Shown: piece after piece, positions 26,913 to 55,651 of the stretch
Layout of the letters: the number at the start of each line of letters is the position of its first letter
Numbering within the stretch: position 1 is the first letter of the stretch
Assembly (NCBI GenBank): GCA_950097015.1
Contig: CATNEN010000041.1
Location: 2,170,001-2,234,000 of the forward strand
Origin: Macrostomum hystrix
Taxonomy: Eukaryota; Animalia; Platyhelminthes
Length of the DNA: 64,000 nt
Direction: 5' to 3'
The notes under the pieces: model-generated
Told to the model about the DNA's origin: nothing
Databases searched by the model: none
Seen by the model: the letters and a program-made list of their open reading frames with translations, nothing else
Translations under genes and position numbers: made by a program

Positions 26913-29900
26913 TGTATGACCAGGAATAGAATTTGCTTACCTTCTGGATACTTTTTTCCTCCATGTCTTGCAAGCCCTCATGGAGGTTCCTGAACAGACG
27001 ATCCCACAACTAGTTTTCTCTCCGTTTTTACAATATTTTTTTTGCCGAGCTATTGACAGACCTGACTTATACTTCAGACCGACGCAAAAAGGTAGCCCCA
27101 TGCCGCTGGACGATACCGGCAGCGGCAGCGGCAGCGATGGGCAGGACAATGAGCTCGGAGGCCCATATCGGCGGAAGCGTCCACTGCCAGCCAGTGCGAG
27201 GCCCCAAAGCCTGCCAGCCTTCATGCGCGAGCGTGCAGTGCCGAACGCCACGGTCACCAGCCTCATGACAGGCCAGCTGGGCAACCTTCCAGAGAGAAAC
27301 TCGCGGACGGTGCGGATTTTCATCAGCTCCACTTTCTCAGGTCCGTTGAGGAGCCTAAAAGAATCGATTGATTTTAAATGGTTAAATTGGTTTCTTGCAC
27401 GAAATCCGACATTGTCCCTTAACCCTGGCCTGACAATTCTGTTCTAATATTTCTTATCGGTTTCTACTTAAAGGCAAGATCTGACAGTTTGTGATAAATA
27501 AGGCTACTAAAAAGAAAGAGCTGGCTACTTTTCTTTGAACTAGGAAGAGCGGAAATGATGGACATGCTGTCCTACCAGGATTGCCCATGCCAGCTGCGAT
27601 GGTGTAAGAACCTTTAGCCCTGGTTCTTGATGGCTGCAGCCGCTCTGCATTGTTACGAAATCTAGAAACGGACGTAGGGTTCTTGGTGGAATGAATGCAT
27701 GAATCTTTGATGGTTCAACTCACGAGCTGAACATCGGGTTGGGACAGAAGCGCAACGCCACACTTATTTGAAATGAAATTATACCCATCATACCAAGACG
27801 TCTGTAAACCGAGATTTTCCTTCTATTTCCCTGGCCTCATCTATATGCAGACATGCACCTAGAGCGAAACGTTCTGATGCAACACGTCTACCCAAGGCTA
27901 AAGCACATGTGCATGATCCGGTATGGATTGGCCTTTCACGTGAGTCTAAACTATTCGGACTGAACTATTCAAAGCTATTCTAAACTATTCAAAATTTCAC
28001 TCAACCACAAAACAAACTCAGTCGTGCTTGGCTAAATTTTCAGTTGGTGGACCTGCGCTGGGGAATTCAGGAAGGGGCCTCGATGGACCAGAAGGCTAGT
28101 GAGATTTGCATGCAGGAAATTGCCCATTGCCAGAGCACTTCTGTCGGCCCACACTTCCTGGTAATCACTGATACAAGCACAAAAATTATGATACCTCAAA
28201 TAAAATGAGTAATTAGCGGCAAAACCAACACAATATTACAGGCTATTTTAAGTCATAGGTACGGAACAAAAACACTTCCATACGCTGTGGCAAAGTCTGT
28301 CATGGAAGCCCTACTGAGCATCATGGAGGGCCGCGGCATGGATGATGCTAGACAGCTCATCGAGAAGTGGTACCACTTAGACGAGAACCAGTTTGATCCA
28401 GTCTACGTGCTTCAACCAATACTTCAGAAATGGTCGGTAACAACGACTGTAAAGCTGGCGCTAGCTGCGTGGCAAAACGATGAGGCGGCACTGCTGCGAG
28501 CGTTGCAAGCCTGTGCTGTGGCCGCGAAGGAAGCCGGAACATTTGGCGAGGACACAGCTGTTCAATTCACGACGTCCGTAACACACCAAGAAGTGCTGAA
28601 TGGCGTGCAGAAGTCAACGTTTGCAAGACGACAGGATGCTCTGCTTTTTCACCGCGACCTCACGGATGTGCTTGACTACGTTCAGATGAAGGAGCCAGGG
28701 GTCCGGAGGTTAATCGACATTAAGGACGATGGTGAGATTGACGATAATGCGAAGCTTCTGCTGGATACCTTGAAAGAGCAGAAGCTACCAAATCTACTGC
28801 CCACTGAAAACAATCTACTGCCCAATGAGCCAGGTGAGGAGATACATCGAGAGTGAAGCCAGACACCCGCTCATGATTCACGGAGCCTCCGGCTGTGGAA
28901 AGACGTCGGTGATGGCTCGAGCTGCAAATCTCGCTCGACAATGGCTTCCCGAATCCGACAGAGAAGGCGCGATCGTGATCATCCGATTCCTCGGAACGAG
29001 TCCGTCGTCATCCAGCATCCGTCAGACACTGCGCTCGATCTGTCAACAAATGGCTGTTGTCTTAGGGACATCAGAAGTGACTGACAGCATTCAGGAAATC
29101 GATTTCAGAGAGATTGTGAACAACTTTTACAAGCTGGCAGAGAAGCTCTGTCAACAATCTCGAAAGGTGTTAATCTTCCTCGACTCGGTTGACCAGCTTG
29201 ATGCTTCAGACGGTGCTCACACACTGGGCTGGCTGAGACCCAACTTGCCGACTGGAATAAAGATTGTGCTCAGCTCACTTCCCGACATGTTCGACATTCT
29301 CGACTCGTGTCGCAGTCTTCTTCGAGACATTGACTCAAGCGAATGCTTTGTGGAGATTTGTGAGCTCAATCCGGAGCTGTGCTGTCACATTGTGAGAGAC
29401 ATGCTGACTGAGAGAGGTCGGTGTCTCACTGAGCCTCAGTGGTGTGTGTTGCGAGCTGCATTCGAAAAGTGCAGTCTCCCGATCTACATGAATCTCGTGT
29501 TCAACCAGGTGATGGCATGGAACTCGTACACTCCAGTAGACTCTCACTCACTCGAGTACACAGTCCGAGGCGCGATCGAGCACCTGTTCAATCGTCTTGA
29601 GCGTCAGCACGGTCAGCTGCTCGTGTCTCACGCTCTCGCCTACATTACCGCATCGAGGAGTGGTCTCGGAGAAGGAGAGATCGAGGACTTGCTATCGTTG
29701 GATGAGGAGGTTCTCGGAGAGGTGTTTGCGCACCACCTTCCGCCATTCATCCGTCTTCCGCCATTGTGTTGGACTCGCGTTCGTCACGAGATCGGACCAT
29801 ACTTGGTAGAGCGCGAAGCAGACGAGGCTCGAGTGTTGACGTGGTACCATAGACAGTTCTGGGAGGTGTGCCGCGATCGCTACTTCTCTAACGCAGAGTT

Positions 29901-32900
29901 CATGAGGCAGATGCACTCACGACTCGCGGACTACTTTCTTGGAGTATGGTCCGATCGACCGAAGCCGTTCAAGTGTCCACCGAATCTGGCAGCAAAGCTG
30001 GCGAGACAGGTGAGTAACAAACGATCGTTAATGTGTCTGCAATGTTTATGAACTATTATTTTCTGACGTATACAAGTACAAATTTGTCTTCAGGGCACCC
30101 CTCCTCCGAGCGAAGCTGACAGACAGGTCCCTCAACAGCCTCATGTTCTTCAGCGAGACGACAGCGGATCAGTGCGCTTCAATCTAAGGAAGTTGAGCGA
30201 GCTGCCGTTCCACCTGCTCCGTAGCGGTCGCATTGATGACTTTCTTGATCACGTGACGTTCAACATGGACTTTCTCGAGTCAAAGCTGAGTGCCACATCT
30301 CACCACTTGCTGCTGCGAGACCTCCAGTTGTTCTTCGATGTGGACGAGTCGGTCCGGGGTAGCGGATCCGACTCAGTAGACGCCGAGAGACTGTTCAATG
30401 CGATGAGGATCGCTGGACCGAGTCTGAGTCACAGTCCGTTGTGTCTTCCGGTGGACCTTTGCGGCCGGCTGAGATCATTCGCAGAGAGCTCGTCTCGGAT
30501 TCGCAAGCTTCTGTCGGACTGCAGACATCGAGATCAGTCGACTTGCATATTGCCTCTGAACGGATGCTTTGACAGCGGCAGCAGCTACACGCACTGCAGC
30601 ATTCAGGGTCAAATGAGCCTTGGTAGGCTATGTGAAAACGGTCAATTCTTTACAGTTTCCTCAGCGGATAACATTGTGACCTGGTTTGATGCGCAGGGCA
30701 AAATGATCAAAACCGTCACCTGTGACTATTTTCCAGCTGTTCACGTAGGCTTGTTTTCGGTACTGCCTAAGAGTGGCAGTTTCTTGACTATTGAAGATCC
30801 TCAAATTGCAAGTACGTATAAAATTTTCCAAGCGAATTTTTTCAGTGGAGTTTGGCATCCGATAATTTCAAACGTCGCTTCTTTTGTATCCGACAGTTAC
30901 TTTGGTGAAACTTATAATTTAGTCGCTTCAAGTGAAAGCCACATCATTCTCAGGAGTAGGATGCGGTCGGCAAACAGATTTTTTTACGTTTGTCTGAAAC
31001 CAGAGCCCCAAATGTTGGGGTACTTTAGCACTAATAAAGAATTTGTGCCTCGTCTAAGTGAAGATTGTTTTGTCTTCTTTGTTGGATCTGCTGTTTCAAA
31101 CGAAGAGCGTGACTTAACCAATGATTCCGTGGTACTGAAACCTCACGTTCTACTTCTTAATGATTTCACCGATGTGTGCCTTCAATGTGCGGAGTTTGAG
31201 TCCGGAGAGCTTCTTAACTACAAAGCATTCGTTGAAGGCTCCGACATTCTGTTTGTAACGACCAGCAAACACGAGCTTGAAAGTACGGTCACATTCACAG
31301 TGCGTCGATTCATTGTGGACGAAAAATCAGTTCGAGAAGACATTTGTTGTCAGGTGCAGTCAGCACATGACCCTGGCAGCATGTTCGATGTCACCCTGTC
31401 GCTGGATCGCACGACCGCCGCCATCTGCTTCACCTGTTTGAAGGAAAGCATGGGGTTCTTGTGCAAGCTGCCGCAGTGCACTTTTACACCGCTGGCCTAT
31501 CACACAGTGTTGCAGAGCTCTTTGCTGAACATTGATAGCTTTGAAAATTATGTTCCTAACTCAAAAAATATTCACATCAGCCATGATGGTCGATTTCTGC
31601 TGTGTAAAACGAAGTGTCAATACATGTTCAACATCTGGTCCGCTCATGACGGCTCGTTTCTGACTGCCATTCCTTATTCGGAAGCATTCTATTGTCTTGG
31701 CCAGATGGCCGGAACTGACTTCTTTCTGATTAACTCAATCCCAAGCAACATTGTTAGTGGTTCGGTCTCACTGACAAAGGTTCTCAAGCTAAGCTTGCTG
31801 ACCGCATATAACATGAGCTCTGATCGCGAGCGAATCAAGTCTCAGCAGCTAGCTGACGCAGTGCTTCACATTGACACCGAAGCTGGTCGTTTTGTATGGG
31901 CGTTTTTTGATCCTCAGTCTGGTGGGTGCGCCTGGCAGCTGGACTTGCGTTCGGCAGCAAAATCAACCATTCTTCTTCACCAACTGGAAAATGCGTCTCA
32001 CGCGAAGTTCCTGAACAAACCAGAAAGCTTAAACAGGATTTCAGACTCAGAAGTCACTGAGGAAAAACCTGAACGAACTCAGAAGTCTGAATTTGTTCAA
32101 TCGCTTATTGAAGTGTTGAAGGACCGGATTGTCCACCGGGATCTTCAAGAGCTTAATATTTTGCTGATTCAAGAGCCAGGGAGTCTTGAACTTTTATTGA
32201 CCGATGTAGGCGATGTCGCTAACTTTGCGTTGAAAAACCGAAGCTCTAATTTTGGGTGTCGCTTCAAAGCCACAAGGCAGTCGACTGATATGAAATTGAG
32301 AATCGATGCACAACATGAAGATCAGCTGACTCACGATCTTCTTAGTCAAATAGAAAACAAGGAACTCGCTATACTGGTTTCAAATCACGCAACACTGAAG
32401 TCATTTCCTATTTCCTATTTGATCCCAGGTAGAACATTAAATATATTCTCTCACAGCAGCAAACTTTCAGGTGTTCTGAGCAAAAGTAAAATTGAAATTT
32501 ATCTGCTGGTAAAATCTGAAAATGCAACAGGTGTTGACTCCAGCCTGCATTCAGTCAGTCAATCATTTAGTGATCCAAGCACAGAATCTTTCCTGTGTAC
32601 GCTCGGTCTTCAAGATCGGTCCATAAAGCGAAGCTTGCATTTGCCAGTCTTGCACCTGGGAAGTCCTTTTATGAAGTATTGCGGCAGGAGAGTCGCCCTG
32701 AACACTCTAAAGCAAGCAGTCTTCAATTTTGTGACAATTTTTGGCAAAAGTGATATGTATATACCTGACGGAGGTCAAAGTATTCAACAGAAAAAGATCA
32801 TCGACTTCACAAAGATGATTTTCCAGCATTCCTTAGACTTCATTCGCATGAAAATCACCGAGTTTTCAAACACAGAAGACATGGACTATTCAAGTAATAC

Positions 32901-33949
32901 TGAACGAATGCAGCAAGAGCTGATGGCTTATCTAAAAAGCTCTCTCAGCGCGAACTCTCAGCAGCAGTCAGGTATTTTCCCTGGAATGCCACTGCTTCAG
33001 CAGCAAAGCATCGACACTCTCATCACGATGATATTCACGACCAATGAAACCAGCTACCTAAGCTTAAATTACAAACTGAAGTTGAGCGCCACCGACCGCT
33101 GCACTCCAACATTGGTATTCGAGCGCCCACTTCACCCTCATCACATGGTGGTGCTGTACCTGTGTGAGTCCGTCTCGAGCTACTCGGATGCGCTCGATCG
33201 TGAGCGAATGTGCTGGCCGGGTCGGCTGGTCGTGTGCGACACGAGCACAATGCAGGTGATGTCCGTGAGCAGCACCTTCGATGCAGGCGCTCTGTACCTG
33301 CTTCCGGACGGAGTTCACTGCATCACGTACCGGTTGAAGGTGTTCAACATTGAGACGGGTGATCTGGTTCGTGATCTAGATCTCGAGGACTCCGTCATCC
33401 TCATCGACATGGTGGCCACTCCGGACCGTCGGCTGGTCATTGGACTGAGATACGAGGTCTTCGAAGCGACGAAAATGATCATTGACTACATGCGAGCAGG
33501 TGGTAGGCTGAAGTCAGCGGAGGCTCAAGAGTTCTGCAGTGAAACTGCTATCAGCAATTCAAAAACGATTCAGGTGAAAATCGCTTTTTGGATCATTTTA
33601 GTTCAGTGCAGAAATTTTGTTCAAACACTTTGTTATTTAAATCGCTTACCTTGTAACAGGCCTACAGCACATGTGACGGCTCGTTGTTGTTTAATTATCG
33701 TTTCGAGGCCGAGCCTATTGCCTTGCTGGTACCTGCCAACGATCGTCTGTTACTGCTCGTGAAGGATCACCCAGTTCAGCTTTATGAGATCCTTTCAGAT
33801 GGCCTTGATTTAAAAGAAAATTGGCCCCATAAGTCTCGGGCAAGCAAAGAGTTTCCTCAGGAACCAGAGTGCTTGGAGCTGATTACGGCTAATCTGAGGA
33901 CGGATTACATGGCCTACCTGAGTAAGTTTTACTTTTGACCCACAAATTC

Positions 33950-34400: not shown

Positions 34401-34694
34401 CTGACCAAACAAACAAATACGTTCGTACAACAAGAAGTGAAAGTCAGCAGCAATCGTACAAACCAGCGAATGAGTAGAGCAGCCTTCGATCCCTCGCGGT
34501 AAGACTGACGATTCCGACTTGATCATTTGAACGTCCCCTGCTCAACATTCCCGAAAAAGATCTGGCAACGGAATAAAAAAATCAAGCACAGTTTTCATGT
34601 GGGATCGATGCTAATCCACTGCAAGTTTTAGAGTAGAGTAGATCGAAATTTCTCAAATGAGCTACTCCGAAAAATTCCTGCAACCATACCGCAG

Positions 34695-34813
34695 GGAAGG
34701 TGCTGGCACGTGGTCTGGCCCGGGTTGCCGACGTCCGACCATCAGATCCGATTGAGTACCTGGCCAGGTGGCTGTTGCAGTTCGTGGCTCATCGCGATGG
34801 ACCTGGGCATTGA
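34695..34813 (+). other. Terminal exon of copy A encoding a Dpy-30/RIIa-like motif
   Basis: Acceptor CCGCAG at 34689-34694, phase 1 matching the donor at 33921. Translates [39 protein letters not shown]-stop. Not in the ORF track. Confidence 0.8.
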
Positions 34814-35677: not shown

Positions 35678-38600
35678 ATGCAGCCTGCGTCAGCGCAGGG
35701 CAGCAACCCGCAACAGCAAAACGATGCCAACGACGTCACCGGTGGAACCCACAGAGAGGACTCCACCAAACCAAAAGGAGCACCAATGAGACCGCGACTG
35801 AGCAATCGGAGAACCCAGAATCTGCCGGCGTTTCTGCAGGGAGCGGTGCAACGTGCCGAGGCCCTCCAGGTCCCTCTCATGGCCGGTGAGATGAGCAACT
35901 TACCTGAGCGTAACTCCAGGACTGTTCGCGTCTTTATCAGCTCGACCTTCTCCGGTTTGATTTTTTCTCCGTTGCAAAATTTCTAACCAAATTTCAACTA
36001 GAAGAGTATAAATTTTTGCAAGCAAGCTTTTAAAACACACTGCAGACATGCATGTTGAACGAAACGTACTCATGCGGTACGTGTACCCGGAACTGAAGGA
36101 GTCGTGCCTGCTGAAGTATGGCCTGGCATTTCAGGTTGGATCGAGTTGTTGTCTATAAATCTGAATAAGCAAATTTTCCAATTACACTTAAAATAAAACA
36201 AATTCTAACCAGAGTTTGATTAGTTGAATAAAACTGCTGTCAGGCTGACAGAATCAGAAGTCTGGCAAATTACTCTTGTGAAAAAATATGGCCTAGGAAA
36301 ATTCCTGATACTCGTAATTTAGTCTAATTAGTCTATTGTTTGTCAAACCTAAATAAAAAAGTGCTAATTTGCTTCCTTACATGTATAACAATAGTAGCAA
36401 TAATATTTGCAGGAGGACTGTGGTGACTGGCACATAATTTGTTGACAGTCGACCATCAGCCAGCGACCTTGGTGAATTCCGCACACACGCACACAGATAT
36501 TGTACACAGGCACTCACTCGCTAAGGGGTGTACATCTGCATTGACTTTCTCATCGTCAGTCAGGTGTGCACTGTCACATGCCTTGGAGGTTGGCCCTCAA
36601 GGGCGTAAATTGCACGAAGCCGCCAAGCCTTCTATCCACGGCTGCGCCCCAAATGAATATGGCCTCGCCGCGGAATCGAGCTCAGGGACCTCGCCACGAG
36701 AGACAAACGCTCTGCCACTCACCCTCTTCCTAACATCATTAGCCTTGCACTGGGACAGTTGCTTGCCAACGGCCTCGAAAATTCCTTCCATCGCGTTCTT
36801 GCAGATCGTAGACATGCGCTGGGGAATTCAAGACGGGGCCTCGCTGGACCAGATGGCATCCGAGATTTGCTTCCGCGAAATTCAGCTGTGCCAGGAAACG
36901 TCTGTGGGACCGCACTTCCTGGTAAACAGCGATTTTCACTGTGATTTTTCTCCCGAGGATGCCCTCTGGCGCTCAAAACAATTCTTAGAAATATCCTTCA
37001 AATTCTACTTAGGTGATCTCGTATCTGAACTTATCCGATGAGTAGCTTAGCTTACAACGTGCTTAGTAACCTGAAAAAACATCTTGGTGCCCGCAGGCCC
37101 TTCTGGGGCATCGCTACGGTACAAAGAAATTACCATATACCGTTGAAAAGACTGTCCTGGACAACCTTATGCAGCAGATGAGCGACACTGCTGCACTTGA
37201 ACTAACAGAGAAATGGTATCGCAAAGATGATAACCAGCTTGAACCTGTGTATGTGCTGCAGCCAGTGCTTTTAAGTCCCGCGTCCGGCAAAGCAGCTACT
37301 TTCACTTGGGAGAAAGAAGAGAAGATGCTGCTCAACATTTTGGAAAATGCGTCTCGAGAAGCCGTCAAGTCTGGTAAAATTGACGAGGCAGAAGCGCTAG
37401 TATTTTGCTCATCGGTGACTGACCAAGAGGTGACGAAAGGAATAATAACATGCAAAGCCGACAGACGTCCGGACACGCTGCTGTGCATCAGGGAACTGAC
37501 TGACGTGCGCGACTTATTAAAGAGCGAAGTAGCTGATGTTTCCAGGTTTATTGAGACAACGATCGATGGGCAAGTTAACGAAAGCACTGTCCAAAGACTC
37601 GAAGAAATAAAAAGCTGTCTAAAGTCAGGCGCTATCCCATGCGAAAATATTATGGAGTACAAAACTACATATGGATCAGTAGCTGACACTGAAAGTATGA
37701 CAAGAACTGAATATGAAACAAAACTTGCAGCAGACCTGAAGCTCCAATTGCAAATACTGATTGACAGAGCAATCGAGAGAATCTCTGAGCTAGAGTCCGA
37801 CAGTCTGTACTCCGAGGTGTTGCAGCACTCGCACCAGTGTGTCAGCTCTGTCCGTCAGTTCCAAGGACGAGAAGACACAATGAGCCAGGTGAGGAGATAC
37901 ATCGAGAGTGAAGCCAGACACCCGCTCATGATTCACGGAGCCTCCGGCTGTGGAAAGACGTCGGTGATGGCTCGAGCTGCAAATCTCGCTCGACAATGGC
38001 TTCCCGAATCCGACAGAGAAGGCGCGATCGTGATCATCCGATTCCTCGGAACGAGTCCGTCGTCATCCAGCATCCGTCAGACACTGCGCTCGATCTGTCA
38101 ACAAATGGCTGTTGTCTTAGGGACATCAGAAGTGACTGACAGCATTCAGGAAATCGATTTCAGAGAGATTGTGAACAACTTTTACAAGCTGGCAGAGAAG
38201 CTCTGTCAACAATCTCGAAAGGTGTTAATCTTCCTCGACTCGGTTGACCAGCTTGATGCTTCAGACGGTGCTCACACACTGGGCTGGCTGAGACCCAACT
38301 TGCCGACTGGAATAAAGATTGTGCTCAGCTCACTTCCCGACATGTTCGACATTCTCGACTCGTGTCGCAGTCTTCTTCGAGACATTGACTCAAGCGAATG
38401 CTTTGTCGAGATTTGTGAGCTCAATCCGGAGCTGTGCTGTCACATTGTGAGAGACATGCTGACTGAGAGAGGTCGGTGTCTCACTGAGCCTCAGTGGTGT
38501 GTGTTGCGAGCTGCATTCGAAAAGTGCAGTCTCCCGATCTACATGAATCTCGTGTTCAACCAGGTGATGGCATGGAACTCGTACACTCCAGTAGACTCTC

Positions 38601-41600
38601 ACTCACTCGAGTACACAGTCCGAGGCGCGATCGAGCACCTGTTCAATCGTCTTGAGCGTCAGCACGGTCAGCTGCTCGTGTCTCACGCTCTCGCCTACAT
38701 TACCGCATCGAGGAGTGGTCTCGGAGAAGGAGAGATCGAGGACTTGCTATCGTTGGATGAGGAGGTTCTCGGAGAGGTGTTTGCGCACCACCTTCCGCCA
38801 TTCATCCGTCTTCCGCCATTGTGTTGGACTCGCGTTCGTCACGAGATCGGACCATACTTGGTAGAGCGCGAAGCAGACGAGGCTCGAGTGTTGACGTGGT
38901 ACCATAGACAGTTCTGGGAGGTGTGCCGCGATCGCTACTTCTCTAACGCAGAGTTCATGAGGCAGATGCACTCACGACTCGCGGACTACTTTCTTGGAGT
39001 ATGGTCCGATCGACCGAAGCCGTTCAAGTGTCCACCGAATCTGGCAGCAAAGCTGGCGAGACAGGTGAGTAACAAACGATCGTTAATGTGTCTGCAATGT
39101 TTATGAACTATTATTTTCTGACGTATACAAGTACAAATTTGTCTTCAGGGCACCCCTCCTCCGAGCGAAGCTGACAGACAGGTCCCTCAACAGCCTCATG
39201 TTCTTCAGCGAGACGACAGCGGATCAGTGCGCTTCAATCTAAGGAAGTTGAGCGAGCTGCCGTTCCACCTGCTCCGTAGCGGTCGCATTGATGACTTTCA
39301 TGATCACGTGACGTTCAACATGGACTTTCTCGAGTCAAAGCTGAGTGCCACATCTCACCACTTGCTGCTGCGAGACCTCCAGTTGTTCTTCGATGTGGAC
39401 GAGTCGGTCCGGGGTAGCGGATCCGACTCAGTAGACGCCGAGAGACTGTTCAATGCGATGAGGATCGCTGGACCGAGTCTGAGTCACAGTCCGTTGTGTC
39501 TTCCGGTGGACCTTTGCGGCCGGCTGAGATCATTCGCAGAGAGCTCGTCTCGGATTCGCAAGCTTCTGTCGGACTGCAGACATCGAGATCAGTCGACTTG
39601 CATATTGCCTCTGAACGGATGCTTTGACAGCGGCAGCAGCTACACGCACTGCGCAATTCAGAACCACTTGAGTGTGTCAAAGTTGTGCGAAAACAACAAG
39701 TTTTACACCATTGGGATTTCCGGTCTCAACGTCACGTGGTATGACCAAGACGGCGTCGTATGGAAGAGCGTGACCTGCGACAGGCTTCCCGTCTTGCATA
39801 TTGGATTGATGCCAGTTCTTTCCTCTAATGGTTGCTTTTTGACTGTTGACAAGGACATTACACAACAACATTTCAAGCTTTACAGAGGCAATCTGCTGAC
39901 AGGTGTATGGAAGTGTGTTCTTGATTTCATGCCGTCTGAAATTCCAGAGAACTTCTATAATTATCACGACCCTGTGCTTGCTGCTTGGGAGAATCACATT
40001 GTTCTACGCAGAGACAACTTTGATAAGATAGAGCAAGGCCTTTGCATCGTATTAAAACCATCGTTACCTACGAAAAGTGTTTGGCTCGTTGCGACGAAAA
40101 CTTCTCCACCGTTGCTGAGCAAGGATTTGTTTTTGTTTTATGTCGGATCACTCGTGCCGCCTTCATGGACTAGCGGCGACTCGTTTCAGCCTTCCTTTAG
40201 GCCCCGCGCGCTTGTTCTTGAAAACTTTCAAGAGGTAAATCTTCCCTCTTCAGAGTTTGATTCCGGGCTTTTAATTAACTTTAAGGCATTTGTTCGTGAC
40301 AATGATATTCTGCTTGTCACATCCAGCAAAGTGAGCCTTGAAAGCACAGCCATCGTCTTTACGATTCGTCGATTTGTCGTGGATGCTGCAAATGTTGTGG
40401 AGGACGTTTGCTCACAGGTCGAGTCTGAGCACGATCCAGGTGACAACTACAACGTCACAATGTCTCTCGATCGCATGACCATTGCAATATGTTTCACCTG
40501 CGTGAGAGAGAGCATGGGCTTTTTATTGAAGCTGCCCCACAGAGCATTCGTGCCTCTGGCTTTTCAACCGATTTTGCGGAAGTCAGTCGGCGTTGTGCTG
40601 TCCAAGTTCTCGAAGGTGCAGGCAAGCACTTTCCAGTTGTTCTTGAGTCACAATGGCGAATATCTGCTTTCGAAGACGCGAAGCCACTTCATGTTCAACA
40701 TTTGGTCTGGTCGTGACGGCTCGTTTCTGGCCGCGATCCCATTCTCGAGCCGCTTCTACTGTCTGGGCCAGATTCCCGGCACAGACCTGTTTCTGATCAA
40801 CACGATTCCTGTTAGCATTGCCAACTCCGCGTGCAATACGATCGTTGTGAATCTCAACAAGCTCGCCACAAGCTCGGCAATGCAAGGCAGCATAGTGACG
40901 GCCGAATGGTGCGTAGGCGGCACTTTCTCGTTCAGTCCTCATGAAAACAGTCTGGTGTCGTTCTACTTCGACAGACATCTTGGCGGCTCCGCTGCAGAAA
41001 TGAGCCTTGAATCAGGTGCCATGCAGGACATTCTGAAGCTGCCGCTTGAACTCTCAGACCCCACTGCTGAAGCGATTGATCAGATCGAAGCGAGATTTTC
41101 TCGCGAAATCAGCATGAAGCTGAAGAGTCGCAGTCTGCACCCTGACATTCGGGAGTTTGGTCTGGAGCTCTTCCAGGCACCGGGCAGCCTTCAAATGCGC
41201 ATCGCGGATGCCGAGACCGTCTTGAATGGAGGATTTGACGGAACTGACAAGAGCTTGACGAATGCAGTTTTCAATGTGAAGCATTTCTCAGGAGAGTATA
41301 AAGTGAATGACGTGACCGTTTCGGGGTCAGACATCTCTGATTTCATAAGCAAATTTTTGAACGAGAGAGGACTGAATTTCGTCATATCTAACCACAGAGC
41401 TCTGGATGCATTTCCTCTCAGCTACTTGATGGCGTCAGAACTGCCTCACGCGTTCAGCCGAACTTCAGTGCTGCCAGCCGTGCTCAGCACCGATGAGCGA
41501 AGGCTGCATCTTCTGCTGGTTGGGAATGCGAAGCCGCCAGCTCGGAGACCGGTCGACAGTGAACTGGCTGAAGTCGCAGCCCCAAAAGAGAGTGCAAACT

Positions 41601-43874
41601 CCGTTCCGAGCAGTTCCGAATCAGAGCAGTCTCGACTGCCAGAAGAGGAAGTTGGTGCCTATGGCAAGATCTGGGGCAGGGATTGCTCGCTTCTGTGCAG
41701 CGTGGATGTCGCGAATCGAGAGATGGACAAGTGCCTGAGTCTGCCAGTTTTGGAAGTCGGAGATGCCTTTATAAAGTTTGCAGGAAGACAGGTGGCCGTA
41801 GAGACTGTTAGAAAATCTGCTGAGAACTTTTTGCTGCTGCTTACGAATGCTTCATTCATGTGGACTAACTCTGATGGTGCAAGTCAACAGGAATTTGGTA
41901 TTTTTATTGCGCGCCATATATTCCAGCACATCCTTCATTTCATTCGACGCAAGCTCCAGGAATTCATGGCTGGAGCTCACGCAGACATTGACTTTTCGAC
42001 AAACGGCGAATTCTTGGCCCGTGAAATGAAAGCGTCTGTTAGCGATTATCTTCTTAAAACACCAGAAATTCTTGGAAAAATGATTCCGATCCAGCTGATC
42101 TCTCTGATTGACATGGATGAAATTGTAGAAAGAATGCTGTTTGCGGATCCAAGGATGAGCTTTCTGTCAATGAAGTATAACATCAAATTGAGCTCCACCG
42201 ACCGCTGCAGTCCAGCAATGATCCTCCAGCGCCCACTTCACCCTCATCACATGGTGGTGCTGTACCTGTGTGAGTCCGTCTCGAGCTACTCGGATGCGCT
42301 CGATCGTGAGCGAATGTGCTGGCCGGGTCGGCTGGTCGTGTGCGACACGAGCACAATGCAGGTGATGTCCGTGAGCAGCACCTTCGATGCAGGCGCTCTG
42401 TACCTGCTTCCGGACGGAGTTCACTGCATCACGTACCGGTTGAAGGTGTTCAACATTGAGACGGGTGATCTGGTTCGTGAACTAGATCCCGAGGACTCCG
42501 TTGTCCTCATCGACATGGTGGCCACTCCGGACCGTCGGCTGGTCATCGGCAAGCAACTGGAGATGCTTCGCGACCTGGAAACAATGGGTGACATTGCCAA
42601 GATTGCAAGCAATAATGACGAGAACAATCCGGATAGAGACAATTTTCTGTCGAGTCAGTCTACGCGGGGCTCAAGAGTAATTCAGGTAAGCTTGGTGTGT
42701 TGAAATTATGTTGCCTTACTTTTCTCATATACGGAAAGTTTCTCATTTTCTTGTACATTCGGGTTCTAGAAAACTTTTGATTTTGGCGAGATAAGTCCTT
42801 TCGCGAAATTCAATGATCGTAAAAGATATTTCTGAATTTCTGAATGCATCTAAGGCGACCATTGTACATTGAATGTCCACTAATATGTTTAGTTGGACTG
42901 TCAGCAAATTTATATATCTGGAATAAACTCAGAAAAATCATCTTCATTACAGGCCTACAACTCATTGGATGGCACTCTTGTTTTTAATTATCGCTTTGAG
43001 TTCGATCCGCTCGCCTTACTAGTACCGTCAAATGGGCGTTTGGTGATTCTGCTCAGGGACCATCCCATTCAGCTTTTCGAGATTGTTGATCCAACAGAGC
43101 GCTCTTCGGCTGAGGCAATCGAATCTGCCTTGCTGCGCATTGATTCGAAGAATGCCAATGCTGTGCTTGTGTCGGAAATTCTTAAGTCTGATTACCTGAA
43201 TTTTCTCAGTGAGTACCCCACACGGATCTTGTCTACGCATATTCTCTAGTATAGCTTGTAGAAGGCGCTATATAACAATTGGCCTGGCCTGCACAGTCAC
43301 AGTATTAGGGCTCAGCCAATGATGTTTGGGACTGGAGGGAACGCTTGTAGCTTGCGTCAGCTTGAGCGTCAATTGTGACCCAGGAGGGCCAGCCTCCAGG
43401 TCGCATTGGAGATGCGCGTCTGATGATGCGAAAGTTAGGACAGCCCTGAGAACACCTCTGTATGAGCGGATTCCGCAATTATCTTTCCTTGTTTGGGACA
43501 GGAAGCCACTTGTTCCGCGTGCTAATCTGGATTATTACTCAGTGTGTACCAAATTTTAACACCAATCGAGGGCGTCAATACGTGAACAATAGGGCGCTCG
43601 TAATTATAATTAGGGTTCCATATGTTACGGGTTGATTCTCAATAGCTTTCAGTCCTGATCGACTGAGCCATTAGAACTAGCATTGACGCTCTGCAAGTTA
43701 AATCACGGCATCCGCAGAGTGGATTATCGACGAATCAACTTAATTCCACTTGCAGAGTCGGTGCTGACCCAGGGACTGGCGCGCGTTGCCGAGTCGCGTC
43801 CACCAGACCCTATCGAATTCCTCGCTCGTTGGCTGCTACAGTTCGCAGCAGCTCAGTCCGCTGGACTGAATTAG
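35678..43874 (+). CDS. NWD1/NWD2-like STAND protein, copy B, intact, about 2120 aa (DUF4062-like, NACHT, propeller, Dpy-30 motif)
   Basis: Exons 35678-35954, 36046-36134, 36805-36921, 37097-39064, 39149-42685, 42953-43208 and 43756-43874. They sum to 6363 nt, all GT-AG with matching phases and no internal stop. Exon 2 and 3 sizes (89 and 117 nt) match copies A and C. Confidence 0.9.
36608..36726 (+). repeat. About 130-bp dispersed repeat, copy 2
   Basis: Aligns by eye with 26785-26912 in the same orientation. Confidence 0.65.
43756..43874 (+). other. Terminal exon of copy B encoding a Dpy-30/RIIa-like motif
   Basis: Acceptor TTGCAG at 43750-43755, phase 1. Translates [39 protein letters not shown]-stop. 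Confidence 0.82.
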
Positions 43875-46884: not shown

Positions 46885-49800
46885 ATGCCTTTCGAGTTTC
46901 TTCTGAGTGACTCCGGCAGCGAGGATGCGGACGAGCTCGACGATGAAGCCCCAGATACGCAGGGGCGCCCGCCGCTCGTCAGCCGGAAGTCGCAGAGCCT
47001 GCGGGCCTTCCTGCACCAGCGAGCATTGCAGCAGGTCAGTGTGACCAAACTCATGAGCGGCGCGATGGACTCTCTGCCAGAGAGAAACTCGCGTGTCGTG
47101 CGAGTGTTCATCAGCTCTACTTTCTCAGGTGAGATATTTTCTTCGAAGTTCTCGTATTTTATGCAACTTAAACATCCATGGCAGAGCGCTAGGCGAGCTT
47201 ACTTTGGTTGGGTGACATTGTTGGTGTGTAAATAGGGTTTGTGCAGTGGCAGGTGGGTACAAAGGTTGAACACGTGGGTGGTTACATAGGGTGGGGGACT
47301 GGTGGGTGGGTACATAGAGTGGGGGGACTGATGGGTGGGTACGTAGGGTGGGTGGACATGTGGGTAGGTACATAAGGTGGGTGCAATGGTAGGTAGATCC
47401 ATAGGCTGGGCGGTGTGTTAGGTGGGTTGGGTTATTAACCAATAAGCTGCAAGCTACACCAGTTTTATTTTACTTCCGCCGAGTAAAAATGTCTCCCCCA
47501 ATTAAGATATGCATCTCGAACGCAACGTCCTAATGCAGCGAGTCTATCCGAAGCTGAAAGAAATGTGCTTGGCGAAGTTTGGATTAGCGTTTCAGGTGAT
47601 GGTCATGTCAAGAATACTGTTCAAGCCTAATGAATTAAAATCCTCAAAGTTGTCTTTAAACTAGACTTGCATCTCCTTTAAACATAGATGGTGGACATGC
47701 GCTGGGGAATCCAGGACGGCGCCTCGATGGACCAAAGAGCCAGTGAAATTTGCATGCAGGAGATCGCACACTGCCAGAGCACTTCTGTCGGCCCGCACTT
47801 CCTGGTAACTTTATGATCCTTATGTCCTCGGAAAAAATTCTGCATACAGCTAGCTCATCATGCTGAAAGATTTGACATCGAAAAAACTTTGCAGGCCATT
47901 CTAAGTCACAGATACGGGACGAAAACACTGCCGTACGCTGTGAAAAAGTCAGTTATGGAAGCTCTAATAAGCACGATGCAAAGCAGCAACATGGATGAGG
48001 CTATTACGCTCACTGCGAAGTGGTATCTGTTGGACGAAAACCAGTTAGAGCCTGTCTACGTGCTTCAACCTATAATGCAGGATTCCTCTATTAAGATAGA
48101 AGCAAAGCATGCCTTGACTGCGTGGCAAAACGATGAGGCCGACACTGCTGCGAGCGTTACAAGCCTGTGCTGTGGCCGCGAAGGAAGCCGGAACATTTGG
48201 CGAGGACACAGCCGTTCAATTCACGACGTCCGTAACACACCAAGAAGTGCTGAATGGCGTGCAGAAGTCAACGTTTGCAAGACGACAGGATGCTCTGCTG
48301 TTTCACCGCGACCTCACGGATGTGCTTGACTACGTTCAGATGAAGGAGCCAGGGGTCCGGAGGTTAATCGACATTAAGGACGATGGTGAGATTGACGATA
48401 ATGCGAAGCTTCTGCTGGATACCTTGAAAGAGCAGAAGCTACCGAATCTACTGCCCACTGAAAACATTATTGTGTACCGACTGGCCTGCAAGTCAGTGCT
48501 CGAAACTGATTGCAACGATGCAAAGGAATACGCTGACAGGTTTGCGATTGATGTTGAAAATCAGCTAGAGAGACTGATAGACAGAGCTGTGGAAAATATT
48601 TCTGAACTAGAGTCCGACAGTCTGTACTCCGAGGTGTTGCAGCACTCGCACCAGTGTGTCAGCTCTGTCCGTCAGTTCCAAGGACGAGAAGACACAATGA
48701 GCCAGGTGAGGAGATACATCGAGAGTGAAGCCAGACACCCGCTCATGATTCACGGAGCCTCCGGCTGTGGAAAGACGTCGGTGATGGCTCGAGCTGCAAA
48801 TCTCGCTCGACAATGGCTTCCCGAATCCGACAGAGAAGGCGCGATCGTGATCATCCGATTCCTCGGAACGAGTCCGTCGTCATCCAGCATCCGTCAGACA
48901 CTGCGCTCGATCTGTCAACAAATGGCTGTTGTCTTAGGGACATCAGAAGTGACTGACAGCATTCAGGAAATCGATTTCAGAGAGATTGTGAACAACTTTT
49001 ACAAGCTGGCAGAGAAGCTCTGTCAACAATCTCGAAAGGTGTTAATCTTCCTCGACTCGGTTGACCAGCTTGATGCTTCAGACGGTGCTCACACACTGGG
49101 CTGGCTGAGACCCAACTTGCCGACTGGAATAAAGATTGTGCTCAGCTCACTTCCCGACATGTTCGACATTCTCGACTCGTGTCGCAGTCTTCTTCGAGAC
49201 ATTGACTCAAGCGAATGCTTTGTCGAGATTTGTGAGCTCAATCCGGAGCTGTGCTGTCACATTGTGAGAGACATGCTGACTGAGAGAGGTCGGTGTCTCA
49301 CTGAGCCTCAGTGGTGTGTGTTGCGAGCTGCATTCGAAAAGTGCAGTCTCCCGATCTACATGAATCTCATGTTCAACCAGGTGATGGCATGGAACTCGTA
49401 CACTCCAGTAGACTCTCACTCACTCGAGTACACAGTCCGAGGCGCGATCGAGCACCTGTTCAATCGTCTTGAGCGTCAGCACGGTCAGCTGCTCGTGTCT
49501 CACGCTCTCGCCTACATTACCGCATCGAGGAGTGGTCTCGGAGAAGGAGAGATCGAGGACTTGCTATCGTTGGATGAGGAGGTTCTCGGAGAGGTGTTTG
49601 CGCACCACCTTCCGCCATTCATCCGTCTTCCGCCATTGTGTTGGACTCGCGTTCGTCACGAGATCGGACCATACTTGGTAGAGCGCGAAGCAGACGAGGC
49701 TCGAGTGTTGACGTGGTACCATAGACAGTTCTGGGAGGTGTGCCGCGATCGCTACTTCTCGAACGCAGAGTTCATGAGGCAGACGCACTCACGACTCGCG

Positions 49801-52800
49801 GACTACTTTCTTGGAGTATGGTCCGATCGACCGAAGCCGTTCAAGTGTCCACCGAATCTGGCAGCAAAGCTGGCGAGACAGGTGAGTAACAAACGATCGT
49901 TAATGTGTCTGCAATGTTTATGAACTATTATTTTCTGACGTATACAAGTACAAATTTGTCTTCAGGGCACCCCTCCTCCCAGCGAAGCTGACAGACAGGT
50001 CCCTCAACAGCCTCATGTTCTTCAGCGAGACGACAGCGGATCAGTGCGCTTCAATCTAAGGAAGTTGAGCGAGCTGCCGTTCCACCTGCTCCGTAGCGGT
50101 CGCATTGATGACTTTCATGATCACGTGACGTTCAACATGGACTTTCTCGAGTCAAAGCTGAGTGCCACATCTCACCACTTGCTGCTGCGAGACCTCCAGT
50201 TGTTCTTCGATGTGGACGAGTCGGTCCGGGGTAGCGGATCCGACTCAGTAGACGCCGAGAGACTGTTCAATGCGATGAGGATCGCTGGACCGAGTCTGAG
50301 TCACAGTCCGTTGTGTCTTCCGGTGGACATTTGCGGCCGGCTGAGATCATTCGCAGAGAGCTCGTCTCGGATTCGCAAGCTTCTGTCGGACTGCAGACAT
50401 CGAGATCAGTCGACTTGCATATTGCCTCTGAACGGATGCTTTGACAGCGGCAGCAGCTACACGCACTGCAGCATTCAGGGTCAAATGAGCCTTGGTAGGC
50501 TATGTGAAAACGGCAATTTCTACACTGTTCCGATATCCGAAAATATTATTACTTGGTTTGACATTGATGGTAATGTTTTGAAAACAGTGACTTGTGACTA
50601 CCTACCTGCGCTCCACATTGGATTGCTTCCGATTTTGCCACGAAGTGGCAGCTTTCTGACCCTGGAGCACCTGCAAATAAGTAACACTTTCAGGCTTTTC
50701 AGAGGCAATTTATTTAGCGGTGTTTGGCGTCCTTTGATTTCGAATGTGGCCTCAGTTGTTGGAGACAGCTTTTATGGCGATAACGACAACCCTTACGCTT
50801 CCAGCGAAAATCACATTGTTTTGAAAAGCAATAAGAAAGCGGCATCTATTGCCTGGTTTTGCTGCCTTAAGCCCGAGCCTCTTAATGTAGCCTACTTCGC
50901 AACTGACAAGACTGGCCAACCTCTTCTAAGTGAAGATTGTTTTGTCTTCTTTGTTGGATCTGATGTTTCAAACGAAGAGCGTGACTTAACCAATGATTCC
51001 GTGGTACTGAAACCTCACGTTCTACTTCTTAATGATTTCACCGATGTGTGCCTTCAATGTGCGGAGTTTGAATCCGGAGAGCTTCTTAACTACAAAGCAT
51101 TCGTTGAAGGCTCCGACATTCTGTTTGTAACGACCAGCAAACACGAGCTTGAAAGTACGGTCACATTCACAGTGCGTCGATTCATTGTGGACGAAAAATC
51201 AGTTCGAGAAGACATTTGTTGTCAGGTGCAGTCAGCACATGACCCTGGCAGCATGTTCGATGTCACTCTGTCGCTGGATCGCACGACCGCCGCCATCTGC
51301 TTCACCTGTTTGAAGGAAAGCATGGGGTTCTTGTGCAAGCTGCCGCAGTGCACTTTTACACCGCTGGCTTTCAACCCCGTGCTGAAGAAGAGCATGCTAG
51401 AGCTTAAAAACTTCAAAAATGACATTCCGAACTCAAAACTATTGCACATCAGTAACGACAATCGGTTTCTTCTGAGCAAAACAAAGTGCCAGTACATGTT
51501 CAACATATGGTCCGCTCGTGACGGCTCATTTTTGACCGCCATTCCTTACTCAGGCAATTTCTATTGCCTTGGTCAAAAGCCAGGGACGGACTTTCTTCTG
51601 ATCTGTTCAGTTCCAGAGGATGTAAGTGGTGCTTCAATTTCCTTGACAAAGGTTCTGAAGCTGAGCATGCTGGCCGCCTACGACATGAATTCTGAGAACG
51701 AAAGAATGACAAATCAGCAGTTGGCTGACGCAGTGCTGCACATTGACGTCGGATCTGGTCGGTTTGTGTTAGCCCAGTTCGATGAGCAGTCTGGTGCATC
51801 GGTATGGGAAATGGACTTGATTTCAGGAGCGAAATCACCAATTAAAATTCCTTCAGCTTTTACTGAGGAGCGTTTGAAGAAGAGCGATGAGTCGTCAGAA
51901 GCATCACCGATTGCCGACGAAGAAGGTGTGGTAGGAGGATCCAAATTAAAAGAGAAGCTAAGAGATGGCCTTGGTAAAATGCACATCGACACTGATTTGA
52001 AAGCACCAAACTTGCTGCTGTTTCAGGACCCAGGAAGCATCCAAGTCAGCCTCAAGGATGCAGGTGGAGTTGCTGTCGGAGAAAGCCTCAAGGGGGCCTT
52101 CTTTGAAGTTTCTAAGTCCCTTTTGGAAATCCAAGCGAATGAAAAGAATAATGGCGGGCTGAAGATGGCAGAATGCCTTCGATTTCAGCTCGCCAACAAA
52201 GAGCTCGAGCTGATAATTTCGAACCATGCATCAACGAAATCATTTCCCGTGAGTGCGCTCATTCCGGGGCACGCTCCGAAGCCCTTCTCACACACAGCTA
52301 AACATTCTGGAGTTCTTTCTAAAGATAAAAGTGAGATTTACTTGTTAGTGAATGCGGCAAACGGACCAAAAATGGAATCCGGAGGTGAAGGCGACTTGAG
52401 CAGCGAATCGCTTTTATGCACACTGAGCCTCGCAGATAGATCAGTGAAACAATGCATGGTCCTTCCTTCGCAGCAACTCGACAGACAGTTCATTAAGTAT
52501 AGTGCAAGACAAGTGGCACTGGAAACCCTGAAGCAGGCGGCGTTTAATTTCTGGATGCTGGTCAACAAGATGGACATTTTTGTGGCCGGATCTGGTGAAA
52601 GTCCTCAGGAAGTAATTGGCATAGATTTCTCAAAGCAGATTTTCCTCAACTCCTTAGACTTTGTGCGCAAGAGAAAGGCAGAATTCTCTATTGATAATGA
52701 TTTCGACTATTCAGCAGACACAGCAGTATTGCACAAAGAACTCATGAGCCATCTCCGCAGCTCACTGATGTTAAATGCTGGCCCTCTGATGGGACAATCA

Positions 52801-55651
52801 GGACTCGGACAGTTGCAACAGTTTGGCGTTGATGTCATTATCACGATGCTCTTTGCGGCCAATGAAATCGACTTTCTTGGGTTGAAGTACAAACTGAAAT
52901 TGAGCGCCACCGACCGCTGCACTCCAACATTGGTATTCGAGCGCCCACTTCACCCTCATCACATGGTGGTGCTGTACCTGTGCGAGTCCGTCTCGAGCTA
53001 CTCGGATGCGCTCGATCGTGAGCGAATGTGCTGGCCGGGTCGGCTGGTCGTGTGCGACACGAGCTCAATGCAGGTGGTGTCTGTGAGCAGCACTTTCGAT
53101 GCAGGCGCTCTGTACCTGCTTCCAGACGGAGTTCACTGCATCTCGTACCGGTTGAAGGTGTTCAACATTGAGACTGGTGATCTGGTTCGTGATCTAGATC
53201 CCGAGGAATCAGTCATCCTCATCGACATGGTGGCTACTCCGGACCGTCGGCTTGTCATTGGGAAGCAGCATGAGCCGTTTGAAGTCATGACTATGATTGG
53301 CGACGCCATACGTGCAAGCAATCAGCCGAATTCTGAAGAGGCGCTGGAGTTTTTCAGTCCTTCTGTGGCCACAAGTTCAAAGATTTTTCAGGTCAATTTT
53401 GCGTGTTCATGATTTTTAACCTTTATTTCGCAATTCTACTTTAAAGGGAAAGCAAAACCTGTGCGAGGAGCATGAACATTCAAGCTTTTAATCACATTTT
53501 GGACCTTTGCGATGACTTAGAGGGCGTGGCATCGCTTCTATAAATCGCGATGACTTAGAGAGCCTGACCTTTATACGCTCGTGTTGTACCCAGGGCCCAA
53601 AGAAACGGCCTGGCTGGGCGACAGCCCGGGAGAGGGACCCTCTAGCTGGGACAACCCCGGTCCCACCTGCCTGTTCCCTTGACGACGCCACGAAAGTTCG
53701 CTGGCGCCGCCGCCCTGAGACCTGCGAGAGTTCGCGAGGACTCAGGTCCCTAAGCAGAGCGAGAGTTCACTCCGAGTGCCCGCGCGACGCCCGGAAGAAA
53801 CGGAAGCACACTCACGAGTCAGCCGGAGTTAGAGGTTGGGTGTATATTTGGTTGTATTGCAGTTCTATCGATTTATCGCACTGATGACCGTGACGTGAGG
53901 ACGTCGGACAAAAACAGGGGGTCGGTCCAGCTGCGGCTCTTTAAATATGCGGTGGGGCAGAGAAAGGAGGGGCAGGGACAGTGAGACTTTGTGCTACATG
54001 CGTGTCCAGCCAATCGCTGGGGCCAGGGCTGGAGCACGAAGGAACGGGGGAGGGTAGAAAAATAAAAGGGCACGCCAATCGCAGGACAGCAGAGGCAGGG
54101 AGGAAAGAAAAGGAGGGCAGGCCGCGCCAGGGGGTGGAGCATAAGCCCCTAACCCCTGGGTCAGCACACGGGGGATGGGCGCAGCTTAGAGCAAGGGACA
54201 AGAGAGAGGGAAAACTGTCACAGGCCTCGGGGGGAAGGGTTGGGCACGCACAACACTCGAATAAAGCGATCGTATATCAACCAGATGATACGCGAGCTGC
54301 TGATGGAGCGATGAACGATATGAACGATGGAGCGCATCTGCAGTAACCCCACTCGCCCATCACCAATTCCAACAGGCGTACAGCACATCGGACGGCTCGC
54401 TGGTCTTCAACTATCGCTTCGAGGCCGAGCCACAGATTGTGCTGGTCCCATCGAATGATCGCCTGTTGCTGCTTATCAAGGACCATCCGGTGCAGCTGTA
54501 CGAGATCCTCTACGGGTCGGATGGAAGCGAAGAGTCGCCAGCGTCCGATTCCAGATGTTCAGCGTCGGTTCCGTTGGATCCTGTGTGTCCCGACCCGGTG
54601 GCTGCAGCTCTTCAGACTGACTACCTCTGCTATATCAGTGCGTATCTACAAGATTAAGAGCTTTGGCAGTCTCACATTTGCCACATTTGTTGTATTTTGC
54701 TACCGTGCACGGGTACTAGGCCTCCAGTCTAGCTGTGGGCGGTGTATGCACAGGGTTTGAGTTCTGGACCACCCGAAGTTTACCATGAAAGAGAGGAGGA
54801 GGAAAGGGGGCCGGCAACCGTCGAGGCGTTCAGAAGCTTCAGGGTCGGGGTTAAATAATGGACAAGAAGTGTAAGGACAATCTAATTGTCTCGTAAATTT
54901 AACTGTTAACGTAGCCCTGTGAGCGGTTGGCCACTTGATAGGAAATAATTGGGCAGGATATACATTTGTAATTGGCAAGGGATTGGCGGACAGCCACTTA
55001 AATCCCTCTGAACTAAAGGTAATAAAGACAGACTAAGAGAATCGAAGCGTAGAAAAATAATGAAGTCGGTTTGATGGTCTCACAGTTTGGTGGTTAGTAC
55101 TTTCTAACTTTCTGTCTGTTTAGCCAGCTCAATAGACTGTTCCTCGTGCATAACGAAAAAACCGGCAACAGCGCGGAGGGAAGGGTCGCACAACGTGTCC
55201 TAAATATACTTACGAGACAGGAGGGTGGGCGCTTGGGCAGGAACTTAGGGCAGCAAGATAAATTGGGGCTGACCAATCAGGTGCCGACCCGGCCACGCAG
55301 AACCGGTTTGTGTCGGTCACCGGATTGGGGCTGGGGTTCGGGCTAAAGCCATACAGGGCTGAGGGTCGGGTGGGGCATGACTACGCAGAGCCGGCAACGA
55401 GGTTGGGGCCAGGGAGGAACTGAGACGGGGAAACAGGGCGAAACAAGGGCAAGGGTAAAGGATAATTAAAGGTAATCCACTATGCGAAGCGCAATCGATC
55501 GCAGTACAGCTCTAAAACTCCCTTTTCTTATTTTGCAGGAAAAGTGCTGTCTCGGGGTCTGGCCCATGTGGCCGACGCTCGGCCCGCGGATCCCGTGGAG
55601 TTCCTGGCCAGGTGGCTGCTGCAGTTCGCTGCACTGCGGCCTGTCGAATGA
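46885..55651 (+). CDS. NWD1/NWD2-like STAND protein, copy C, about 2078 aa if a +1 frameshift near 48139 is corrected
   Basis: Exons 46885-47128, 47507-47595, 47688-47804, 47895-49881, 49966-53391, 54376-54637 and 55539-55651. At about 48139 it reads GAGGCCGACACTG versus GAGGCGGCACTG in copy A (one extra base), which splits exon 4 into ORFs 47889-48329 and 48133-49923. This may be a true lesion or an assembly error. Confidence 0.82.
53460..54341 (+). mobile_element. Probable insertion (solo-LTR-like) inflating intron 5 of copy C
   Basis: This intron is 984 nt versus 86 and 267 nt in the paralogues. It contains a TATA-like CTATAAAT, an AATAAA near 54260, and GTGGGGCAGAGAAAGGAGGGGCAGGGACAG, which resembles the intron-6 element. 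No convincing TSD was found, so boundaries are approximate. Confidence 0.4.
55150..55460 (+). mobile_element. LTR-like dispersed repeat in intron 6 of copy C
   Basis: Homologous to the reverse complement of 33950-34400 (shared TAAATA...CGAGACAGG(G)AGGGTGGGCG, CCAAT and CGCAGAAC.GGTTTGTGTC blocks). Confidence 0.55.
55539..55651 (+). other. Terminal exon of copy C encoding a Dpy-30/RIIa-like motif
   Basis: Acceptor TTTTGCAG at 55531-55538, phase 1. Translates [37 protein letters not shown]-stop. Not in the ORF track in this frame. Confidence 0.8.

Follow-up and report, generated by a model that had tools for sequence, protein, structure and literature searches.

A 64,000-nucleotide stretch of the genome of the flatworm Macrostomum hystrix (assembly GCA_950097015.1, contig CATNEN010000041.1, positions 2,170,001 to 2,234,000; hereafter the window) carries three paralogous plus-strand genes in tandem, which encode STAND NTPases of the NWD1/NWD2/TEP1 type. 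In our reading, to which we assign a probability of about 60%, they are a cluster of old flatworm paralogues that would act as NAD-hydrolysing (NADase) switches, homogenised by gene conversion and docked through a C-terminal Dpy-30 domain. The encoded protein is laid out as a variable N-terminus of ~80 amino acids (aa), a TIR-like DUF4062 domain with a Glu at the position expected to be catalytic, a NACHT domain, an NWD1-type winged helix and an NWD-type helical domain; these are followed by a diverged propeller of ~8 blades, a variable and partly helical stretch, a conserved beta module and the Dpy-30 motif. An earlier note made from the sequence alone had described the locus as three genes of about 2100 aa each, diversifying, in a combination that its author did not know from any described family. 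Closer analysis bears out the existence and expression of the cluster and most of the proposed anatomy; it does not uphold the intactness of all three genes, the diversification or the novelty of the combination.

Gene models and transcripts

The three genes were rebuilt from open frames and splice signals between 27100 and 55651. Each has seven exons, all 18 introns have GT..AG borders, the intron phases are the same in all copies, and exons 2 and 3 measure 89 and 117 nt throughout, as had been claimed from the sequence. All motifs quoted in the earlier note are present. Copy 1 (27100..34813) consists of exons 27100-27340, 27851-27939, 28044-28160, 28242-30009, 30094-33573, 33660-33921 and 34695-34813, and its frame is broken in exon 4. 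Copy 2 (35678..43874; exons 35678-35954, 36046-36134, 36805-36921, 37097-39064, 39149-42685, 42953-43208 and 43756-43874) is intact and encodes 2120 aa in one uninterrupted frame. Copy 3 (46885..55651; exons 46885-47128, 47507-47595, 47688-47804, 47895-49881, 49966-53391, 54376-54637 and 55539-55651) has an open frame of 2078 aa only when base 48139 is left out. The expected length of about 2100 aa therefore holds for copy 2, which has no internal stop, but not for the broken copy 1 or for copy 3 as assembled. Intron 5 differs in length between the copies (86, 267 and 984 nt in copies 1, 2 and 3, respectively). A tblastn search of the window with the copy 2 protein as query detected no fourth copy or fragment.

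Transcripts were sought in the RNA contigs of four small runs of 2020 (X3-X6), which contain 81–89% of the sampled words of copy 2 exon 4. Joints in these contigs coincide exactly with the predicted introns in 11 out of 18 cases (introns 5-6 of copy 1, introns 1-6 of copy 2 and introns 1-3 of copy 3). Separate transcripts were found for each of the three copies. Contigs that start at 35667, ahead of copy 2, and at 46861, ahead of copy 3, carry loose ends identical to the 3′ end of the spliced leader (SL) of M. lignano, a published leader of 35 nt (PMC8629364), marking these plus-strand positions as trans-splice acceptors. Given the joints at predicted introns and the SL ends, we conclude that the genes are real, expressed and SL trans-spliced, with the leader seen on copies 2 and 3.

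Three further observations concern the transcripts. The ATG that ends the leader at the 35667 junction is out of frame with the copy 2 ATG at 35678 and is followed by a stop after one codon; thus, the leader supplies a minimal upstream open reading frame (ORF) and not the start codon. One RNA contig spans the last exon of copy 1 and runs on for ~690 nt past its stop (34814-35501), terminating 166 nt short of the trans-splice site of copy 2. Either copy 1 has a long 3′ untranslated region, or there is a read-through precursor common to copies 1 and 2, in an operon-like arrangement. Finally, at 47542-47707 contigs of all four runs match exons 2-3 of copy 3 in part and then pass into unrelated flanks, with 34 differing letters in between; they are the transcript of another family member located elsewhere in the genome.

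Domain architecture and relatives

Pfam models identify the NTPase core. NACHT (PF05729) scores 39.6–40.7 bits against a cut-off of 26.7, and the HTH_NWD1 winged helix (PF25469) 69.8–70.9 bits against a cut-off of 27, in exon 4 of all three copies. The NACHT core of copy 2 lies at 37937..38254 on the plus strand, from Walker A (GASGCGKTS, aa 442-450) to Walker B (aa 538-547). The coding sequence of DUF4062 is split over exons 1-4, and Pfam scans of single N-terminal exons, which are too short, returned no family; similarly, sequence searches of the PDB with N-terminal pieces of exon 4 gave chance matches only, to TRPM3 and DHODH. When spliced, the N-termini are 53–56% identical (E 1e-54 or better) to the PF13271-positive stretch of the predicted M. 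lignano protein P0002, which in turn matches, with E 2e-14, the sequence of the crystallised TIR-like domain of human TEP1 (11gz_A).

DUF4062 has been described in a 2026 preprint as a TIR-like NADase, with TEP1 active through Glu1008 and with contributions from Arg908 and Arg976 (10.64898/2026.05.01.722283); bacterial Swarozyc is another DUF4062 protein of the NADase type. We mapped the TEP1 residues with a chain offset of 893, which puts the expected letter at each of R908, R976 and E1008. TEP1 Glu1008, the second Glu of SVTEMEV, aligns with an invariant Glu, which in copy 2 is Glu272 (codon 37427..37429, plus strand, in exon 4) within SVTDQEV and in copies 1 and 3 lies within SVTHQEV. TEP1 Arg976 is the Arg of the equally invariant RYG. 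Both the Glu and the RYG Arg are kept in all copies and in all Macrostomum relatives. Together with the Pfam matches and the 253 HMMER matches described below, which run through the helical domain, the TEP1 match bears out the assignment of the N-terminal half to the NWD1/NWD2/TEP1 type.

Exon 5 encodes 1140–1180 aa that we refer to as the sensor. None of the three exons 5 matches any Pfam family, including the WD40, propeller and NWD2 propeller models, and no leucine-rich repeat (LRR) family, the sensor type of NLR (NACHT-LRR) receptors in the strict sense, appeared in any Pfam scan. HMMER, run exhaustively against 1.84 billion representatives, gave 253 matches, nearly all of which (~240) are confined to exon 5 residues 1-240, the NWD-type helical domain and first blade. 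Past residue 240, matches come only from Macrostomum and a few other flatworm proteins. An hhalign comparison with an NWD-like WD40 protein reached 99.2% probability over exon 5 aa 5-290, with the first WD40 repeat placed on ‘NVTWYDQ’, and hhalign between segments of the sensor gave no signal of internal blade repeats.

An AlphaFold model of exon 5 aa 165-650, built with 12 sequences, has a mean local confidence (pLDDT) of 76.8, a global confidence (pTM) of 0.77 and ~36 strands arranged in fours. VIA-align superimposes model residues 1-407 on 8-bladed WD40-type propellers with Z 13–17 (maximum 17.4) over 300–333 residues, in a comparison set of 970 chains that are all propellers; the matches include Rsa4, Fbw7/Cdc4, ODA16, DPP-IV and the Drosophila Apaf-1 homologue Dark (Z 15.3). 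NWD2, TEP1 and APAF1 are among the propeller matches of a Foldseek search against Swiss-Prot models. The model thus supports a predicted WD40-type propeller of ~8 blades in the first half of the sensor (exon 5 aa 165-571; 39641..40861 on the plus strand in copy 2). The ‘variable propeller’ of the earlier note is supported for this half; in residues 640-1179 no second propeller was resolved. Long helices are predicted at ~872-997 of this stretch, and the conserved beta module at ~1020-1111.

The beta module (42103..42552 in copy 2, plus strand) coincides with a second conversion patch and is the only distal part that the trio has in common with cestode and trematode relatives. It is followed by the last exon (34695-34813, 43756-43874 and 55539-55651 in copies 1, 2 and 3), in which the Dpy-30 motif (PF05186, cut-off 22) scores 46.9, 42.1 and 39.6 bits. 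The Dpy-30-like motif proposed from the sequence is therefore above the Pfam threshold in all three copies; a co-match of RIIa to this ~40-aa tail is weak and sub-threshold. The proposed order of DUF4062, NACHT, winged helix and helical domain, propeller and Dpy-30 is borne out as a whole.

The best public protein matches are all from M. lignano (33–60% identity). Copy 2 aligns end to end with the M. lignano prediction P0001, which has DUF4062, NACHT, HTH_NWD1 and Dpy-30, at 41.6% identity. The order DUF4062-NACHT-HTH_NWD1-sensor-Dpy-30 is found in the uncharacterised M. lignano predictions P0001, P0002, P0003 and P0008 (UniProt/NCBI), and P0009 has the same order with DUF4062 not detected; at least five M. 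lignano lineages carry this architecture. A tree of the propeller region unites the trio in one clade with a support of 0.96, joins copies 1 and 3 as sisters within it, and separates it from at least five M. lignano lineages; this grouping agrees with the lineage-specific set proposed in the earlier note. A hidden Markov model of the last 50 residues of the family matches the C-termini of trematode NWD1/2-like proteins (Calicophoron daubneyi, E 9e-7; Schistosoma spindale, E 1e-4), for which Pfam Dpy-30 is the best match, below threshold, and a cestode protein has the conserved beta module. No Dpy-30 tail motif was found in the other ~140 NWD-like proteins fetched. Since the Dpy-30 tail is present in M. 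lignano and, in a weak form, in trematodes, the fusion is likely a flatworm trait and not specific to this locus. Our literature search found no paper describing the combination, nor any with both Dpy-30 and NACHT. The trio is a variant within the NWD1/NWD2/TEP1 family, undescribed in papers and known as unnamed database predictions; in this sense the combination was not new.

Comparison with better-known proteins places the trio more precisely. NWD1, NWD2 and the flatworm NWD1/2-like proteins have the same DUF4062, NACHT, HTH_NWD1 and helical domain followed by a WD40-type propeller. Unlike in NWD1 and NWD2, the predicted propeller of the trio is too diverged for the corresponding Pfam models and shows no detectable repeat, and it is followed by a long variable helix-rich insert and the Dpy-30 end. 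With TEP1 (PDB 11gz) the trio shares the DUF4062 sequence match, the positions of Glu1008 and Arg976, and the downstream NACHT and predicted propeller; it differs in having neither TROVE nor vWA, in a Ser in place of Arg908, in a large insert between RYG and S-x-T-x-x-E, and in being a putative NADase. The plan of an N-terminal effector, a STAND ATPase with winged helix and helical domain, and autoinhibiting WD40 propellers would, by analogy, be that of Apaf-1, Dark and CED-4, although the trio has NACHT and not NB-ARC, a TIR-like domain and not CARD, and an additional C-terminal Dpy-30. DPY30 of COMPASS, the RII subunit of protein kinase A and radial spoke proteins carry the same Dpy-30/RIIa-type motif, which here forms the tail of a 2100-aa STAND NTPase.

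Gene conversion and the state of the copies

Nucleotide identity between the copies is strongly mosaic. The main conversion tract of 1.8 kb (28823..30606 in copy 1, plus strand) is 99–100% identical to 37878-39661 of copy 2 and 48695-50478 of copy 3, and takes in NACHT and the winged helix, intron 4 (84 nt) and ~170 codons at the start of exon 5. A second patch (33079-33440 in copy 1) is 96% identical to 42185-42546 of copy 2 and 92–93% identical to copy 3, and patches 28467-28812 and 31147-31440 are common to copies 1 and 3. The remainder outside the tracts is 43–65% identical. Synonymous divergence is ~0 within tracts and saturated outside them. The ratio of nonsynonymous to synonymous rates (dN/dS) is 0.14–0.7 wherever measurable, apart from one 100-codon block at 1.49, and positive selection finds no support at 100-codon resolution with three sequences and saturated synonymous sites.

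Judged from these sequences, the pattern is that of old paralogues subject to repeated gene conversion and purifying selection. The description of the cluster as ‘diversifying’ finds no support in these data, in which dN/dS is below 1 in all measurable blocks but one and synonymous sites outside tracts are saturated. The NACHT core is indeed identical between copies, as the term ‘invariant switch’ implied; it is so because of recent gene conversion, which covers an intron too, and constraint alone is insufficient to account for it. Clustered plant and animal NLR genes show the same mosaic of converted and divergent tracts in tandem paralogues. The trio differs from them in having no LRRs, in conversion that has evened out the NTPase core together with two patches of the sensor, and in the lack of a positive-selection signal.

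The integrity of copies 1 and 3 requires separate consideration. Relative to copy 1, the assembled copy 3 carries one surplus base at 48139. This base is absent from the RNA contigs of X4, X5 and X6, and without it the 2078-aa frame is open. Either the assembly is wrong at this base or the strains differ, and copy 3 is not dead.

The lesion in copy 1 is of a different kind. At 28813..28822 (plus strand) a 10-nt filler, itself a copy of 28791-28800, replaces a 228-nt segment that is present in copy 3 at 48467-48694. The net loss of 218 nt shifts the frame, with a stop at 28854-28856, and the missing sequence is the linker directly ahead of the P-loop. The lesion separates an upstream ORF of 353 aa, which holds the DUF4062 part only, from a downstream ORF that starts at Met 28825 and extends without interruption for 1681 aa, from NACHT to Dpy-30. 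We inspected whether a cryptic short intron could restore the frame and rejected this, as any GT..AG of fitting length removes the P-loop. Words across the junction are present in two DNA runs of 2023, possibly the source of the assembly itself, and the word search gave matches in DNA runs only. The lesion looks recent, because RNA shows splicing of the 3′ introns of copy 1 and dN/dS in its sensor is below 1. Its position coincides precisely with the left end of the main conversion tract, which suggests that the deletion arose from a faulty conversion or repair event.

Outside the genes, the window is rich in minisatellites: at least 15 long arrays, with 85–100% identity between units, make up much of the non-genic sequence, and several of them yield long spurious ORFs. 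On the left they occupy 480-2100, 4625-5331, 6691-7588, 11022-11972, 12509-14604, 18968-19672, 20404-21833, 22549-23328 and 25746-26433, and on the right 56309-57065, 57718-58747, 59311-60046, 60410-61181 and 62326-63776. A further array at 45262-46348 separates copies 2 and 3 and is covered in part by RNA contigs. Intron 2 of copy 2 contains a short dispersed element (36556-36746) with a related copy at 26782-26888. Its word depth in RNA contigs exceeds 1000, with many different flanks on the loose ends. On the minus strand it has a tRNA-derived look, with a B-box-like GGTCCCTGAGCTCGATTCC, and no ARAGORN or Rfam call. It is probably a repeat resembling short interspersed nuclear elements that is abundant in transcripts. 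Rfam and tRNA scans over the window gave no match.

Proposed mechanism, alternatives and meaning

If the proteins work like Apaf-1, and as has been proposed for TEP1 (10.64898/2026.05.01.722283), the propeller region would hold NACHT closed pending a ligand. Ligand binding would then lead to nucleotide-dependent oligomerisation, which would bring the TIR-like domains together for hydrolysis of NAD(P)+. The Dpy-30 motif, as in X-type four-helix-bundle dimers of this kind, may pre-pair the protein or may dock on the amphipathic helix of a scaffold. Repeated conversion would keep the NACHT core identical between copies, with the sensor parts remaining far apart, and copy 1 would have been disabled recently by the deletion at the tract edge.

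Several points weigh against this scheme. The position of TEP1 R908 is a Ser here (STFSDM), and the R908 Ala mutant of TEP1 is less active (10.64898/2026.05.01.722283). No NADase activity was seen in vitro for human NWD1, NWD2 and NPHP3 in the one published test (10.64898/2026.05.01.722283); therefore, a retained Glu is no proof of activity. A dN/dS below 1 is no sign of an arms race. The structural case for the sensor covers its first half: AlphaFold on the whole 1179-aa exon 5 reached a pLDDT of 45, Foldseek on that model returned propellers at TM 0.1–0.2, and residues 640-1179 were poorly modelled, with a weak language-model match to WD40 families. Dpy-30 domains occur widely among ciliary and chromatin proteins and would also fit a non-immune role.

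This last point leads to the reading that the proteins are housekeeping or cilium-linked scaffolds like NPHP3 or NWD1, with Dpy-30 bound to the helix of an A-kinase-anchoring-protein-like partner (for example in axonemal radial spokes) and with a TIR-like domain that is catalytically silent. Flagellar proteins often carry Dpy-30/RIIa motifs, the closest structural matches of the propeller include many ciliary or intraflagellar transport (IFT) WD40 proteins (ODA16/DAW1, IFT-A, IFT172), and the inactivity of human NWD1, NWD2 and NPHP3, the dN/dS below 1 and the conserved islands in common with parasitic flatworms all point the same way. However, the propeller matches are generic, having been drawn from chains that are all propellers, and the catalytic Glu and RYG Arg are retained throughout Macrostomum; expansion in several lineages, tandem copies and conversion are also features found more typically in receptor families than among single-copy ciliary genes. 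We regard a scaffold role as rather unlikely, though as the main rival of the switch reading.

Two other readings concern the locus itself. That it is a decaying cluster, with most copies pseudogenes and the architecture a relic, would agree with the frame-breaking 228-nt deletion in copy 1, whose junction was seen in DNA runs only, and with the frameshift in assembled copy 3. Yet copy 2 is intact and spliced, RNA contigs without the extra base give copy 3 an open frame, 1681 codons past the lesion of copy 1 are free of stops and its 3′ introns are spliced, and dN/dS is below 1 across the sensor; we consider decay improbable. The near-identity of 1.8 kb among the copies might further be taken to mean that a single gene appears three times through assembly or haplotype duplication. 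Identity of 43–65% outside conversion tracts rules this out for practical purposes, and intron lengths and exon 1 sequences differ, with distinct transcripts from each copy; the earlier note had also considered this unlikely.

Beyond the reading of the cluster as conversion-homogenised, Dpy-30-docked NADase switches, we tentatively raise a wider possibility, which we hold with considerable doubt. The family may be a distinct class of flatworm STAND receptors, in which a ligand-gated NACHT ring would control a TIR-like NAD(P)ase and Dpy-30 would provide anchoring or pre-dimerisation; the fusion would date from an early rhabditophoran, have degenerated in trematodes and have expanded in Macrostomum with a core kept uniform by conversion. 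We know of no NLR or Apaf-1-like protein that is localised through C-terminal Dpy-30 docking.

For the reading of gene clusters of this kind, the locus holds a practical lesson: one of the ‘three receptors’ is the casualty of a recent deletion, and an assembly frameshift would lead one to write off a second copy in error. The locus further provides a clean case of tandem STAND genes in which concerted evolution is limited to the NTPase core. The recognition of DUF4062 as a TIR-like NADase dates only from 2026, and among animal proteins only TEP1 has been shown to be active. Macrostomum is a free-living genus whose best-studied member, M. lignano, is a laboratory model, and a transcribed, expanded NWD branch that combines the catalytic Glu with a docking domain offers a workable system for finding out what such switches sense and where they act.

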